A stretch of DNA of 64,000 nt from Octopus sinensis (GCF_006345805.1 NC_043002.1:100874001-100938000); one strand, 5' to 3'; counted from the stretch's first letter, positions 3,851 to 64,000 are shown. A program made the numbers and translations. The notes: a model not told the origin generated them from the sequence alone.

Positions 3851-4789
3851 ATGTATTTTTCCGTGTTTTAAGAAGTTATAGTGGATGAGTCAAGCAGTGC
3901 ACCACCAAATAGTCAACATAACTTTCTTTTTGAAGAGCTCGGGCGTAGGGAAGGCTTTCGGTGTTTCAATTTGGTCCAGCAAGTGTTAAAACGTATAGTT
4001 TTTCAAGCACTTCATGCTTTTTTAGTATTAGCGAAGGAAGAAGGAGTTTAGCGAAGCGGGGGCGTGTGTGAGTGCGTTGCAAGTTTTTGTGTCGGTCCGT
4101 GCTTGTATTACGCGACTTGAAATATCAGTTGGAAAGATTAATTATTGTCTTGAGCAATTGTTGATCCACGGATGAATAATTAAAGGACAGCTGTAAAGCA
4201 CAGAGGAAATGATGGTATGTGTGCGAGGTGTGCATTCTAGAACAGGTATGGGGTTTTATGTGGGTTTACGGTAGAGAATAAGTGCAATTTATTACGTGTG
4301 TGTCTATGCGAATGGGTGTACGTGAAACAGAGAGCCGGTATGTCTGGGTAGATACATCATATCATTAGAGTGTAAGACATTATGTATGTGTGGACGTGTT
4401 GGTGTATGTAGAGGCGGTAGTCAGGTGGAGAACAGGTTGTATGCGTATGCATGTGTGTAAGCGATAGCTGTGAGGATGTGCTGGGCAGTGGCGTCTGTGT
4501 GTTTGGGTATTGGATGTAAGTGATAGTATGGTGATGAGATAAAGTTGGTCGGTGGAGCATCGGTCTGAGTGGGGTACGATGGATGGTATACTGAAAACAA
4601 GGGGCAGTTGAAGAAAAAGAAAGGCTGAAGATTGACTTGGTGGCATTGAAGAATACCGGTAAGGGTCACATGAATGATCGGCAGAGCGAAAGTAAATGTT
4701 GCGTGTTAATCAAATTTTTGTTGTTACGGTTTCTAACAAGCATAAAGATCACAGTATATATAGGAAAAACAAAACAAAAAGAAACTGAA

Positions 4790-4905
4790 GAATTGGCTCT
4801 GAAACTAGTTTATTACATTAGTTACTTAAATGAGTTTATTCCTCATCAATTTATTGTAAACTGGTTTGGCGTTGGTTTCGGTTTTCAACTGGTCAGTCTC
4901 TCTAG
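4790..4905 (-). other. Gene A exon 5: last coding base, TAG stop (4904-4902) and 3'UTR with AATAAA
   Basis: Acceptor tttatAG at 4907-4906; AATAAA at 4814-4809 followed by a T-rich tract; paralogous exons with the same acceptor and AATAAA lie downstream of B and C; 3' end position approximate. Confidence 0.7.
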
Positions 4906-5199
4906 CTATAAAAGTGAAGATATACAAAACTTTTACTTATATACAAGAACAAATATTTCCAAATATAATTGTCAAGAGATGTTAATTATAAAGTAAAGAT
5001 TTTAATAGAATATAAATAAAACCTTTGCAACTTTACAGTCATTCAACAATACAATTAGAATGTGCTGAGTTCGATTGCCCAGGGAGGTATGAGACAGAGT
5101 AATCGCGCTGACAAAGCAAAATGTATTTATTTATTTTTCCGGTTTAATATATAGACAAATAGAAACGCATAAACAAATATGGATCCTTATGTAGAGACA

Positions 5200-6600
5200 C
5201 CCATTTTGATTAAGATGTACTGGGTAAAAATCTTCCAAAAGCACTATTCAATCTGATCGGGATGAGTTTTAACAGGTGCACCACTTTTGCGCGTCTTCTC
5301 TTGCTAATTATGTGTATTAAGATGGTAGTCTGTAACAATAAATTTTCATTGCAAATGGATCGTCGTCGTGGCAAAGTTTGAAATAAGCTGTTAGAGTAGT
5401 TTCTTTAGGAACCAATGACTGTTGAGCGGCGATTGCAGCTGTGATATAGAGACGTTGCTCATTTTTCAGACAAACAGCCGACTGTTGAATGTTTGCTCTT
5501 CAAAGGCAGGATGTTTATGATAAAGTCTGTATATATGAATATGGTAGAAACCTTCAGCATCAATAAAGCATTTTGGAGAATATTCAGATTTCCAATATAT
5601 GAACAATAACGGTCCTGTAATGGAAGTGCAAGTATTCTCCAAAATGCTTCCTTTCTGCTGATGCATCTACCTTGCTTTCATATATTCTGACTTCATCTTG
5701 AACATCCTGTCTCTGTAGAGCAAACATTGCAGTATCGGATCCTTTGTTGACATATTTGCAAACATATTTTATGGATTTCACCCGAGTTGTAAAATTCAAA
5801 ATTGATATGAACATTAGATATTTTGAGTAACAATGGGTTATATGGAACAGTCCACCTATTGCCAATTTGAAATTGTCCAACTTTTGTTTGAGAATCTAAT
5901 TCTCAAGGATTCCTTCTTTTTTAAGTTACATATCTATCGTTGAGTGTCTTTCAAACATGATAGCCTTTCAAAGAACTTCGTTGATATTTCTCTGTGGTAT
6001 CTATTGTCGTGCATACAGGGTCAATTATTGTTAAGAGCTCCACATGGGCCATGTACCATTTGAATCTTAACTATTTCATACAATGCTTTGTCTTTAGATG
6101 GATTGGGTAGATTTGCAGATATTATTCTGTCAATTTGGTCAGAATGAATTTTTTCATGAAGCCAAATAAGAATGAATGCATGAGGTTACTGCCATTCAGT
6201 TGTGTGCGTATGACAACTGATCGGTCCAAAGATATTTCCCTTTGTCATGACATCCATCACTTTCAACACTTTCTGTCTGGAAGACCTATGAGTGAGGTGG
6301 TATATATTTACATGTGTTTGACCTGGAAGCAATCCATTTTGAATCTCTTTCCACTTCGGAATACATTTCAGAGTTATGAATAGGTCTGATCTACCAACGT
6401 TCCTAATATATGTCATGGCACATATCTGGGTCTACCAATAAACATGAGTGGAAGGATGGACAATTTCTCAATGTCTTCATCAGCAATTTTGTTATCGATG
6501 TCATCACGTAAATTAATGTATGACTCAGATCTTAATTCTTTCCGGTAGGGTTTTATGAATACTAACCATTCCGCTTGTTGTCTTCTTTTTTAAAAAAGCA
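5200..6600 (-). mobile_element. Helitron Rep-domain fragment
   Basis: MTYIRNVGRSDLFITLKCIPKWKEI...LLPGQ and KSIKYVCKYVNKGSD are Helitron RepHel motifs. Confidence 0.85.
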
Positions 6601-6849
6601 ATGTGGTTGATGGCAGCCAACCTCAATCCAAATCCAATCCAGTCAAAATGAATGGGAGATCATCCACGATTTAAAAAACAATAATGATGTCATAATGAAG
6701 GGAGGGATTAAGGGAAGTACTGCTTTCATTGTGAATAATAAATACTAAAACAATTCTGTCTCTCACCTCTTAGAAGATACTACTCACCATGAAAGTATAG
6801 ACAACAACCAGCAAAATCAACGATCAAATTAAACGCACCCGTTTTCTAA

Positions 6850-61225: not shown

Positions 61226-61656
61226 GTGAGTATATATGTGAAGCTATTAAAATTACTTCATATATTACATTTTCTCAATATCATTGTTGCGTTGACCTTT
61301 TTGCAACATTTCCTCTTCTGTTTTAAATTTAGCTCCAACTTTGAAGTGAAAATACAAATCTGAGGATTTCGAGTTGAACATTAATATATTTAAAATACCT
61401 TTTTAAAAAAATTTATAATGAGCTTGTCTTTTTGTTTTTCAGAGAAGCCCATGTCACACTGTTTACTATTTCTCAAGTAGAGCATGACTGCTGCTATATT
61501 TTCAATATACAGGATATTCCATTATAGTTTTTCTTAGCCAATTTTTCATCAGAACTAGAGAGTAAAATAACTACATGCTTTTTCCTATTATCGTAGCAGA
61601 TTGAACTTAGGAAGAAAATATCCCAACTATAATTTGGAGTGGCGAACGCCTTCTTC

Positions 61657-62070
61657 AAGGCAGCGAGATGGCAGAAACGTTAGCACGCCGGGCGAAATGC
61701 GTAGCCGTATTTCGTCTGCCGTTACGTTCTAGGTTCAAATTCCGCCGAGGTCGACTTTGCCTTTCATCCTTTCGGGGTCGATAAATTAAGTACCAGTTAC
61801 GCACTGAGGTCGATATAATCGACTTAATCCGTTTGTCTGTCCTTGTTTGTTCTTTCTGTGTTTAGCCCCTTGTGGGTAGTAAAGAAATAGGTATTTCTTC
61901 GGCCGCTACGTTCTGAGTTCAAATTCCGCCGACGTCGACTTTGCCTTTCATCCTTTCGGGTCGATAAATTCAGTACCAGTTACGCACTGGGGTCGATATA
62001 ATCGACTTAATCCGTTTGTCTGTCCTCGTTTGTCCTCTCTGCGTTTAGCCCCTTGTGGGTAGTAAAGAAA
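61657..62070 (+). mobile_element. Two tandem family-1 SINE copies
   Basis: Mirror of 9250-9675. Confidence 0.85.
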
Positions 62071-63071
62071 AGAGAAGAGAATCATAATGGGGGTCATGAG
62101 ATGATAACATAGCTACATTTATTTATCTCCTTATCACCATCAAAAGCTCTAATACAACTAATTTTCCACGTCCACTAAGAATTAAAACAACGGGAAATTA
62201 AGAGTTAAGTTCTTGCTGCTGATCATGAATTAATTAATGCCAGATATTCTTCCCTACCCTTAATATACTGTGGCTATAAATTCGGTATGGCCACATTAAG
62301 GAACAAGTCTCACAAGATGTCAGTAAGATAGGTGTTTATCACCAGAAAGAGGGAGGGTGATGGTGACATAAACTATTTCAATATTGTCAGTTGAAAGGGT
62401 CCTAAAATAGAAGACAAAGGAGGTCACAGTAAGATCTAAATGGGTATTAAGGATACAGGGGAAAATTTATATCCAAAATTTAGAATGATTTATATATTAT
62501 ATTTTTACAGTCTATATACATTACTCTTTTACTCGTTTCAGAAAGCCGAAGTCGGCTGCGGTCATACTGGTGCACCATCATATATTTTATTCTTTTGTTT
62601 CAGACATGTGACTAAGGCTGCTCCGAAACAAAAGCATGGAATTTCATAGTCATCTCTAATATGTTTGCCAGAAAGATAGAGCTCGCTCTCCTACACGAAA
62701 GTTAATACCCATTTCTTATTTATGTTCAACACAATCGAAATGAGTAAACTTCAAAATTCATAGTACACGTTTGGCAGCTGTTTTGACCCCTGTCGACAAC
62801 GGCAGTATCTGGTACTACACACACACACACACACACACACACACAAACACATACACCACATACACATACATATGCATATATATATATTTATATATATATA
62901 TATATATATATATATATATATATATATATATGTGTGTGTGTGTGTGTGTGTGTGTGTGTGTGTGTGTGTGTGTGTGTGTGTGTGTATGTGCGTCTGTATG
63001 TGTACATATAGATATATTCATATATATATATATATTCAAAAATATAAGGAATGACCATAATAGGACATCCG

Positions 63072-63180
63072 ACTCACTCTGCTGAAGAGGCACGCCAGTT
63101 GTAAATAAATTTAATTTAATTTAATTAATTTGTTTACCAAAGTTGGCCGAAACCATGCATAGTCCAGAGATGAAAGGAGT
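63072..63180 (+). ncRNA. Type I hammerhead ribozyme inside a 261-bp element with 45-bp inverted ends (63034-63078/63250-63294)
   Basis: Stem I CTCTG/CAGAG; CTGAAGA 63082-63088; stem II GGC..GCC closing a long AT hairpin; GAAA 63149-63152; near-palindromic stem III; GUC triplet. Confidence 0.7.
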
Positions 63181-64000
63181 AAATGTTTTTATTTCTCTTT
63201 CAATTTCAGAATTATAATTATTAGCGGTTTGAGTTTGGCTGCTCTTTCTAGTGTGTCGAATGTCCTATTATGGCCATTCCTTATATTTTTGAATGTATTT
63301 TATATAGTCTTAGACTATCTTTTCTTTCTCGCTATATATGTATGTATATATACATACATACATATATATCCGTATATATGTATAAGCATATATGTATATA
63401 TATACACACACACACACACACACATATATATATATATATATATATATATATGTATGTATGTATGTATGTATGTATATTAAAGTTGGGTGGCTACCGCACG
63501 AATATATGCTTGTGTATGTGTATTATGATTGTCAGGGTGGTGTGCATGTGTGCGTGTATGTGTGTGTTTGTTCGCATGTGTGCTATAATTTGTCAGGGCC
63601 GTGTGTGTGTCCGTATGTACACGTGTGTGTGTTATATTTGTCAGGGCGGTGATTGTCCATGTGTAAGTGTTACGTGTATGTGCCTGTGCATGTGTGTATA
63701 TGTCTGAGTCTGTGAGTCATTGTTGTTACTGTTAAATTTTCTTGCGTATGGATGTGCGTTCCTGGGAGGTGAGGTATTGTGTTTGTGAATGCGTGTGGGT
63801 GGTGTGCGTGCGTATAGGAATTAGACTATAACCGAGTTGTTCCGACACCGTTCGATAGTCCAATATATTTTTTAAGATATAAGAGTAGGTTTAACTGTGG
63901 TATATATTTTGGTTGTCGATTGCCCTTAGCCCGTCCTATTCCATTAAAAATTAATGATGATGGGTACTATCTTTCCATTAGAATTCCATTTAATTCTTGG

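Follow-up and report, generated by a model that had tools for sequence, protein, structure and literature searches.

What has produced the set of related exons that recurs across a 64,000-nucleotide stretch of the Octopus sinensis genome (scaffold C6:100,874,001-100,938,000; hereafter the window, with positions counted from its start unless prefixed C6), and what would these exons encode? The original prediction, made from the sequence alone, held that they represent four members, A, B and C in tandem on the minus strand and D inverted, of a larger lineage-specific array in birth-and-death evolution. We find that the window contains one intact gene (A) and three broken or partial copies (B, C and D) of an undescribed family of secreted proteins with ten cysteines. 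Overall, we think it quite probable that the locus belongs to a chromosomal cluster of an Octopus-restricted, secreted, fast-changing 10-Cys family that resembles pairs of fibronectin type I (FnI) modules and is under birth-and-death evolution.

The window is AT-rich and contains no Ns, with abundant microsatellites and transposon debris. Exon units were identified with a stop-to-stop open reading frame (ORF) scan and tblastn of exon peptides against the window, followed by direct reading of the sequence. As had been predicted, exon 4 is present four times, exon 3 twice and the exon carrying a stop codon and polyadenylation signal (exon 5b here, exon 5 in the original prediction) three times, with A, B and C on the minus strand and D on the plus strand. 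AG/GT splice borders occur at every exon 3 and exon 4; exon 3 is of phase 1-1 and exon 4 of phase 1-2. The exon 5b copies of A, B and C have in common a "tatag" acceptor, an early stop and a conserved AATAAA. The units are as follows:

28322-28397, minus strand: gene A exon 2, with ATG at 28391 and predicted signal peptide MTRLLPSCLLILVALKDVMSGDP, ending in phase 1 and joining exon 3 in frame
15379-15519, minus strand: gene A exon 3, first 5-Cys module, phase 1-1
10111-10261, minus strand: gene A exon 4, second 5-Cys module, phase 1-2
8670-8715, minus strand: gene A exon 5a, a candidate final coding exon that gives the tail LHVTKAAPKEKHGIP before a stop; its homologue is the last coding exon of XP_052825017
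4795-4905 (about), minus strand: gene A exon 5b, Leu then immediate stop, with a conserved AATAAA at ~4800-4812
47044-47191, minus strand: fragment B exon 4, TGG to TGA at the conserved Trp (47118-47120)
44602-44812, minus strand: fragment B exon 5b, TTDLPIGNRSQNQTSLL then stop and polyadenylation signal
60723-60857, minus strand: gene C exon 3, from tblastn and sequence reading
57828-57975, minus strand: gene C exon 4, from tblastn and sequence reading
48793-48971 (about), minus strand: gene C exon 5b, Leu-Lys-stop and polyadenylation signal
~60947-60955: rearrangement junction between C and D, a clean head-to-head join
61075-61225, plus strand: fragment D exon 4, differing from A exon 4 by 5 nucleotides and 3 amino acids
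62604-62649, plus strand: fragment D exon 5a, counterpart of A exon 5a (8670-8715)

As read from the DNA, A is predicted to be intact, with one exon for the signal peptide, two with five Cys each and a short tail. Exon 2 was revealed by comparison with paralogue E (C6:100,960,866-100,976,444, plus strand), a neighbour on the D side of the window, and is conserved in both E and the Octopus bimaculoides orthologue. Since a splice acceptor precedes exon 2, a non-coding exon 1, which we did not locate, would lie further upstream. The copy at 28322-28397 is the only exon 2 in the window and it belongs to A, so that B, C and D are without a signal peptide. At the other end of the gene, the last exon originally assigned to A (5b) is present and is homologous to the last exons of B and of O. 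bimaculoides XP_052824406, but a second candidate last exon lies nearer, at 8670-8715. With two candidate last exons, the predicted A protein would contain 121 residues (via 5b) or 136 residues (via 5a). The 5b tail is ~17 residues long in XP_052824406 and B; in A and C, immediate nonsense codons cost the protein this tail alone.

Are the spliced products real? When 1.84 billion representative proteins were scanned exhaustively with HMMER, an exon 4 profile retrieved three O. bimaculoides members of the family, XP_052825017 (P0001, 129 residues), XP_052824406 and XP_052824407. XP_052825017 is 69% identical to hand-spliced A with its exon joins exactly as predicted, XP_052824406 and XP_052824407 show the exon 2-3-4 join deduced for A, and the exons of the O. 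bimaculoides proteins map alike in genomic loci L031-L033. Because these RefSeq proteins contain the deduced join, we take the spliced product to be real. A profile search of 5.8 billion proteins added A0A0L8IDT5 (P0006), LOC106872057 and O. sinensis LOC118763691, the last having the same three coding exons at C6:10.381-10.391 Mb. The NCBI models for the O. bimaculoides members are 128-139 residues long. Two of the five HMMER-scan matches (P0003 and P0005) are repeat proteins with no relation to the family and were not used further. Searching proteins by word index with spliced A gave no candidate, although the orthologue that the HMMER scan found exists.

How widely is the family distributed? 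Six-frame searches of the whole O. sinensis genome with A, C and P0007 found convincing pairs of exon 3 and exon 4 on C6 alone, in three clusters: at ~9.80, 9.87 and 10.38 Mb; at ~96.65, 96.71, 96.75 and 96.93 Mb; and at 100.79-101.12 Mb, where A, C, E and three more pairs lie together with fragments B and D. The larger array that had been proposed thus exists as three clusters, with ~13 potentially complete loci in all. One of these ~13 loci (LOC118763691) has an O. sinensis protein record, and the rest appear to be unannotated. The members known from O. bimaculoides are located at 107.0-107.17 Mb on a chromosome of 117 Mb. No relatives outside Octopus were found among the 1.84 billion representatives scanned with HMMER or in the profile search of 5.8 billion; the relatives found are "uncharacterized" proteins of O. 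bimaculoides and O. sinensis. The suggestion that the family is lineage-specific therefore stands, with the lineage narrowed, within the databases searched, from cephalopods to Octopus. Literature searches on octopus cysteine-rich and midkine genes found no published description of the family.

The four copies differ greatly in how closely they are related and in how much of the gene they retain. A and C, said originally to share 15 of 46 residues in exon 3 and 17 of 50 in exon 4 with all ten Cys kept, share 14-15 of 46 and 16 of 49 (17 of 50 counting a split-codon Tyr), and 10 of 10 Cys align. Their introns are alignable, as had also been stated, with A/C and B/C blocks at 73-88% identity (A/C, 9844-10646 with 57556-58368 at 73% and 15224-15471 with 60570-60814 at 75%; B/C, 46923-47511 with 57711-58297 at 88%), and exon 4 residue identity among A, B and C is 33-61%. 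A short interspersed element (SINE) thought to be common to intron 3 of the copies is indeed present there in B and C, but the copy in A is inverted and lies in intron 4:

58720-58959, plus strand: SINE-like 240-nucleotide repeat in C intron 3, with its B intron 3 counterpart at 47531-47750
9437-9676 (inverted, A intron 4), 20205-20444 and 61655-62077: further copies of the SINE-like repeat

Copy B is, to judge from its sequence, dead: it consists of exon 4 and exon 5b only, with a nonsense codon in the former, and no exon 2 or exon 3 was found upstream. Of the stops assigned to B in the ORF scan, one is in the exon (47118-47120), but the second lies in an intron. The frame of B exon 5b agrees with the C-terminus of database member P0002. 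For C, homology to other exon 3 units ends ~90 bp upstream of exon 3, at the C/D junction, and for D, homology ends at the same junction, 126 bp upstream of its exon 4; no repeat was found at the join (~60947-60955). D appears to be the exon 4-5 half of an A-like gene within a 20.5-kb inverted segmental duplication. The states originally given to A, B, C and D (intact, dead, 5′-incomplete and recently copied, respectively) all hold, except that D, although a recent partial copy, is one end of an inversion-plus-duplication and no simple new gene copy.

A third C-like copy lies outside the window, ~180 kb away at C6:101,113,750-101,116,732 (plus strand). Its exon 4 protein is identical to that of C′, the mirror copy of C described below, and at the DNA level it shares 95.7% identity with C and 97.7% with C′; no D-like exon was detected upstream of it. 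This copy may be a complete version of gene C, and its 95.7-97.7% identity implies that real recent segmental duplication happens in this region.

How could the arrangement in the window have arisen? The O. bimaculoides locus L031 is collinear with the minus strand of the window and contains, in this order, one C/B-like exon 4-5 copy, the A orthologue and an E-like exon 2; these share a single orientation, and an inverted D copy is absent. In O. sinensis, the block running from C exon 3 through B to A exons 2-3 is inverted relative to a unit made up of exon 4-5, downstream DNA and E. One copy (X) of a 20.5-kb repeat, at the other end of the block, completes gene A, and the copy next to E (X′) is D:

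1-10387 (in full C6:100863921-100884387): inverted-repeat arm X, with A exon 4-5 and downstream DNA
60950-64000 (in full C6:100934950-100959364): inverted-repeat arm X′ (D), adjoining gene E

The A/D pair, described at first as an inverted duplicate, is that, but as part of a 20.5-kb repeat that extends beyond both window ends. From its sequence, this arrangement looks like an inversion with duplication at its breakpoints. The history that we favour is that tandem duplication gave rise to B and C; that inversion with 20.5-kb inverted duplication preserved A in full, reduced D to an exon 4-5 remnant beside E and cost C its 5′ end; that a nonsense mutation struck B; and that gene conversion took place between the inverted repeats. 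The DNA between B and A exon 2 (32737-37144) matches the region downstream of A at 69-84% identity (compared with window 6-1511 and L031 22287-26559) and represents an older copy of that region, which suggests that the ancestral unit of tandem duplication was the gene plus its downstream spacer. A and D differ by 3.0% over 13.8 kb of gap-free sites, with 209 fixed differences. O. sinensis and O. bimaculoides separated ~34 million years ago (PMC10700109); calibrated by the 12-18% intron divergence over that time, the A/D duplication may be a few million years old and B and C, at 12%, would be about as old as the species split.

Could the multiplicity instead be an artefact of assembly, with uncollapsed haplotypes or a fold-back mis-assembly mistaken for paralogues? 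We consider this unlikely, although the surrounding region gives reasons to ask. Each unit of the window is repeated in mirror image further left, outside the window, within a 193-kb palindrome (C6:100,767,298-100,960,278; window ~-106,700 to +86,280) that has neither spacer nor Ns. Its centre is at ~C6:100,863,915, ~10.1 kb left of the window start, and its outer ends fall in a high-copy repeat of ~850 bp. The arms show 0.16-0.22% mismatches in unique DNA, with indels about equally frequent, and at the centre identity falls to 96% with many gaps. When the X copies of both arms are aligned, 209 sites split A and its twin A′ from D and its twin D′; differences between A and A′ and between D and D′ are limited to tracts carrying the other copy's type, as if two repeat types had been mixed, and the twins are identical elsewhere. 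Exchange tracts of the left arm, in alignment columns 4-11 kb (~window -3,000 to 6,000 and three counterparts), run from both A-type through swapped to both D-type, and represent either gene conversion between the inverted repeats or a consensus built from mixed reads. Duplicated BUSCOs make up 5.2% in this assembly compared with 0.4-0.5% in those of O. vulgaris and O. bimaculoides (PMC10700109), and for this reason we think the mirror arm somewhat likelier to be an assembly duplication than a real palindrome. A simple crossover within the inverted repeats can be ruled out as the source of the mirror arm, since whole repeats travel with the block.

All of these arguments bear on the mirror copy, which is outside the window, and do not apply to A, B, C and D. 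The exon 4 residues of A, B and C are far from identical, the C/D join is clean and away from repeats, and the third C-like copy would make three haplotypes, which is impossible in a diploid individual. The possibility that copies are haplotypes, raised with the original prediction as what could undo it, fails within the window: because the 3.0% divergence between A and D, with its 209 fixed differences, is more than ten times that of the arms in adjoining unique DNA, A and D are paralogues, and two haplotypes of one locus are ruled out. The mirror duplication leaves the four copies in the window unaffected and probably inflates the copy number of the region as assembled.

If the copies are genuine paralogues, what has shaped them? 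In A and C, exon 4 is 62.8% identical, compared with 83.4% and 75.3% in the 300 bp of flanking introns (Fisher p = 5e-5), and the contrast between exon 4 and its flanking introns has the same direction for E and C (p = 7e-5) and for A and E (p = 0.006). Between paralogues, the ratio of non-synonymous to synonymous divergence (dN/dS, by the Nei-Gojobori method) is 1.2-2.3 in most pairs; exon 3 of A and E differs by 10 non-synonymous and 0 synonymous changes, and the two versions of C differ by 3 replacement and 0 silent changes. Between O. sinensis and O. bimaculoides, the ratio of the corresponding uncorrected proportions (pN/pS) is 2.6 for A exon 3, 1.1 for A exon 4 and 1.7 for C exon 4, with pS, at ~0.12, in agreement with intron divergence. 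Across six members, 14 alignment columns are invariant and include all 10 Cys. Given pN/pS of 1.1-2.6 and the retention of 10 of 10 Cys, we read this as diversifying selection on a fixed scaffold, for which the exon-versus-intron contrast and the invariant scaffold are the stronger evidence. The Cys, Trp and Gly positions would be held fixed, with other residues changing at or above the neutral rate.

Birth-and-death evolution, as originally proposed, is supported by linked paralogues of differing age (divergence ~3% for A/D, ~12% for B/C and 17-35% for A/C flanking DNA), by pseudogenes and fragments, and by gain and loss between species. Alongside the intact A are B, with its nonsense codon, and the truncated C and D, and subfamilies span both species. 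A paralogue tree, suggested earlier as a check, was built from exon 4; it is weakly resolved, but contains three groups (bootstrap 85-92), each of which includes both species. Birth and death of fast-evolving, secreted, Cys-rich proteins is a well-known phenomenon; it is the family itself that is undescribed.

An alternative is that the units are neutrally decaying relics, either all pseudogenes or exons of one long repetitive gene, and that loss of constraint accounts for the high dN/dS. This would fit with ratios near or slightly above 1 that are not significant in pooled tests, with visible defects in three of the four window copies and with the failure of O. sinensis annotation to include these genes. 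Nonetheless, we regard it as quite improbable. The 10 Cys, Trp and Gly positions are kept across paralogues that are ~1/3 identical and across two species ~34 million years apart, frames are open and splice sites canonical in A, E and several other loci, and NCBI has built gene models for O. bimaculoides. Moreover, exon 4 diverges faster than introns, which is impossible under neutrality, and the mismatch between the phase-2 end of exon 4 and the phase-1 start of exon 3 prevents successive units from being joined in one frame. A single long gene of repeated module exons is ruled out by these phases, by the single signal exon and by the polyadenylation signals.

What kind of protein would a gene under diversifying selection of this kind encode? 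Exons 3 and 4 align with each other, each with five Cys in the pattern C-x6-C-x6-W-x7-C-x4-C...G-K. This homology implies that the mature protein is a tandem pair of 5-Cys modules of ~48 residues each. A complete gene would comprise non-coding exon 1, exon 2 with its conserved signal peptide, exons 3 and 4 for the modules, and a short variable tail; the protein it encodes is predicted to be secreted, to contain ~100 residues and 10 Cys, and to fold as a tandem pair of fibronectin-type-I-like modules. We modelled folds from two database members, P0001 (XP_052825017) and P0007, which are 35% identical to each other. The AlphaFold models, with a predicted local distance difference test score (pLDDT) of 78 for P0001 and 81 for P0007 and a core pLDDT of ~90, are all-beta with two similar sets of strands, in agreement with a tandem pair of the small two-strand plus three-strand antiparallel beta module of FnI. 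In Foldseek searches of the PDB, FnI pairs occupy ranks 1-11 for P0001 (best E 1.2e-2) and ranks 1-17 for P0007 (best E 2.5e-4), with 85-96 aligned columns and probabilities of 0.9-1.0. FnI modules are encoded one per exon, with phase-1 borders (class 1-1). The octopus genes also have one module per exon; exon 3 is 1-1, and exon 4 has a phase-1 start and a phase-2 end.

Several observations weigh against this reading of the locus. A Pfam-A hmmscan (E <= 10) of hand-spliced A, C and E and six database members matched no family, fn1 included, and sequence and profile searches of the PDB gave chance matches alone (Oxpecker, E = 0.28; an oxidoreductase, E = 0.32). The template modelling (TM) scores of the fold matches are modest, at 0.4-0.55 (target-normalised up to 0.55), and the octopus modules have five conserved Cys each, compared with four in FnI (disulfides 1-3 and 2-4). 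A, C and E are missing from the O. sinensis protein set, and the region lies in a part of the assembly that looks partly duplicated. Pooled tests of non-synonymous versus synonymous change are not significant by themselves (p = 0.09-0.2), and the preference for positive over relaxed selection thus rests mainly on the exon-versus-intron contrast. Finally, a role in recognition or an arms race, whether in immunity, saliva or venom, or chemical signalling, is one that we infer. Given the failed fn1 profile and the different Cys count, we describe the family as FnI-like in predicted fold and in exon layout rather than as a demonstrated member of fn1. Pfam searches with single exons also gave no match.

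Two other families with ten cysteines were considered. Midkine and pleiotrophin resemble the octopus family in size, Cys count, two-domain build and 5-exon layout. That the octopus proteins are divergent members of this growth-factor family (miple in Drosophila), with 10 Cys, two beta-domains and a signal exon followed by one exon per domain, is suggested by the UniRef name of A0A0L8IDT5 (P0006), "Pleiotrophin/Midkine N-terminal domain-containing protein", but is highly improbable, as PTN_MK_N (PF05196) and PTN_MK_C (PF01091) match none of ~ten members, P0006 included, at E <= 10; the top 50 Foldseek PDB matches of each model, led by FnI pairs, include neither midkine nor pleiotrophin; the octopus Cys are arranged 5+5 in two homologous modules rather than 6+4; and isoelectric points in the octopus family range from 5.2 to 9.2 instead of being uniformly very basic. 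The beta-microseminoproteins (PSP94), which have 10 Cys in ~94 residues and include a squid contact pheromone, were rejected, having neither a Pfam match nor a place among the fold matches.

The introns of A and the DNA around B also contain other elements. A full-length tRNA-Cys(GCA) is present at 28207-28278 (minus strand; ARAGORN; Rfam, 51.6 bits), 44 bp downstream of A exon 2, in a ~175-bp insertion that neither E nor the O. bimaculoides orthologue has; the tRNA sequence may represent a tRNA gene or form the head of a SINE of tRNA origin. A intron 2 contains a decayed Helitron fragment at 17966-19446 (minus strand; Pif1 2B domain, E = 3.8e-11; weak Helitron_like_N) that is common to the orthologous O. 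bimaculoides intron (82% identity) and is therefore older than the species split. The same intron carries ~500-bp repeats, two tandem and one inverted, at 15930-16972 and 21563-22126, that are 93-97% identical and have a 96% match in O. bimaculoides intergenic DNA (L031 7398-7598); they probably represent a mobile element of recent origin. At 22650-23102 (plus strand) there is a weak reverse-transcriptase fragment. ORFs at 44843-45539 resemble a transposase by eye and have no match in Pfam.

If our reading of the cluster is correct, the product would be a putative soluble extracellular binding module, with an exposed beta-sheet surface under diversifying selection. If it behaves as FnI pairs do, its ligands may be extended peptides or matrix components, held by beta-strand addition. 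A bolder proposal, which we put forward tentatively and regard as rather doubtful, is that octopuses carry genuine FnI-class modules as a free-standing, two-module secreted protein with a diversifying surface for octopod-specific recognition. To our knowledge, FnI is regarded as a chordate module; if the proposal is true, this supposed chordate module would be much older or would have arisen twice, and the recognition task could lie in saliva or venom, in immune binding or in signalling by a contact pheromone. To the study of module evolution, an FnI-like fold beyond the chordates would be of interest. Taxon-restricted secreted families often underlie venom, immunity and chemical communication, with few cephalopod examples, and the present family has no name in O. 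bimaculoides and next to no annotation in O. sinensis. Within 200 kb, the sequence records a conserved scaffold, exons that diverge faster than introns, partial duplication, inversion and gene conversion. The 193-kb mirror duplication is also a warning for gene-copy counts in GCA_006345805.1.

How does the locus compare with known systems? Like the FnI pairs of vertebrate fibronectin (2-3FnI, 4-5FnI and 8-9FnI), the predicted octopus protein has two successive disulfide-bonded, all-beta modules of ~45 residues, a conserved Trp in the first long strand and one module per exon. It differs in the lack of an fn1 sequence match, in having five Cys per module, in its occurrence in a mollusc and in its fast turnover; fibronectin itself is a large mosaic protein, whereas the octopus protein is free-standing, with 100 residues. 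With midkine, pleiotrophin and Drosophila miple it has in common secretion, a precursor of ~120-140 residues, 10 Cys, two beta-sheet domains and comparable exons, but the octopus modules are homologous to each other, their Cys are divided 5+5, the proteins are not uniformly basic, and neither profiles nor fold support the relationship. The rearrangement itself recalls duplication-triplication/inverted-duplication (DUP-TRP/INV-DUP) and fold-back events, with an inverted block flanked by 20.5-kb inverted copies and exchange tracts between the copies; it differs in the further 193-kb spacer-less mirror duplication, which is possibly non-biological. Finally, although the family differs in fold and modest size (~13-16 loci) from the conotoxin superfamilies, beta-defensins, three-finger toxins and rodent ESP/ABP genes, it shares with these taxon-restricted families a conserved signal peptide and Cys framework around a hypervariable mature region, exons that change faster than introns, tandem clusters that include pseudogenes and gene fragments, and copies gained and lost in individual species.

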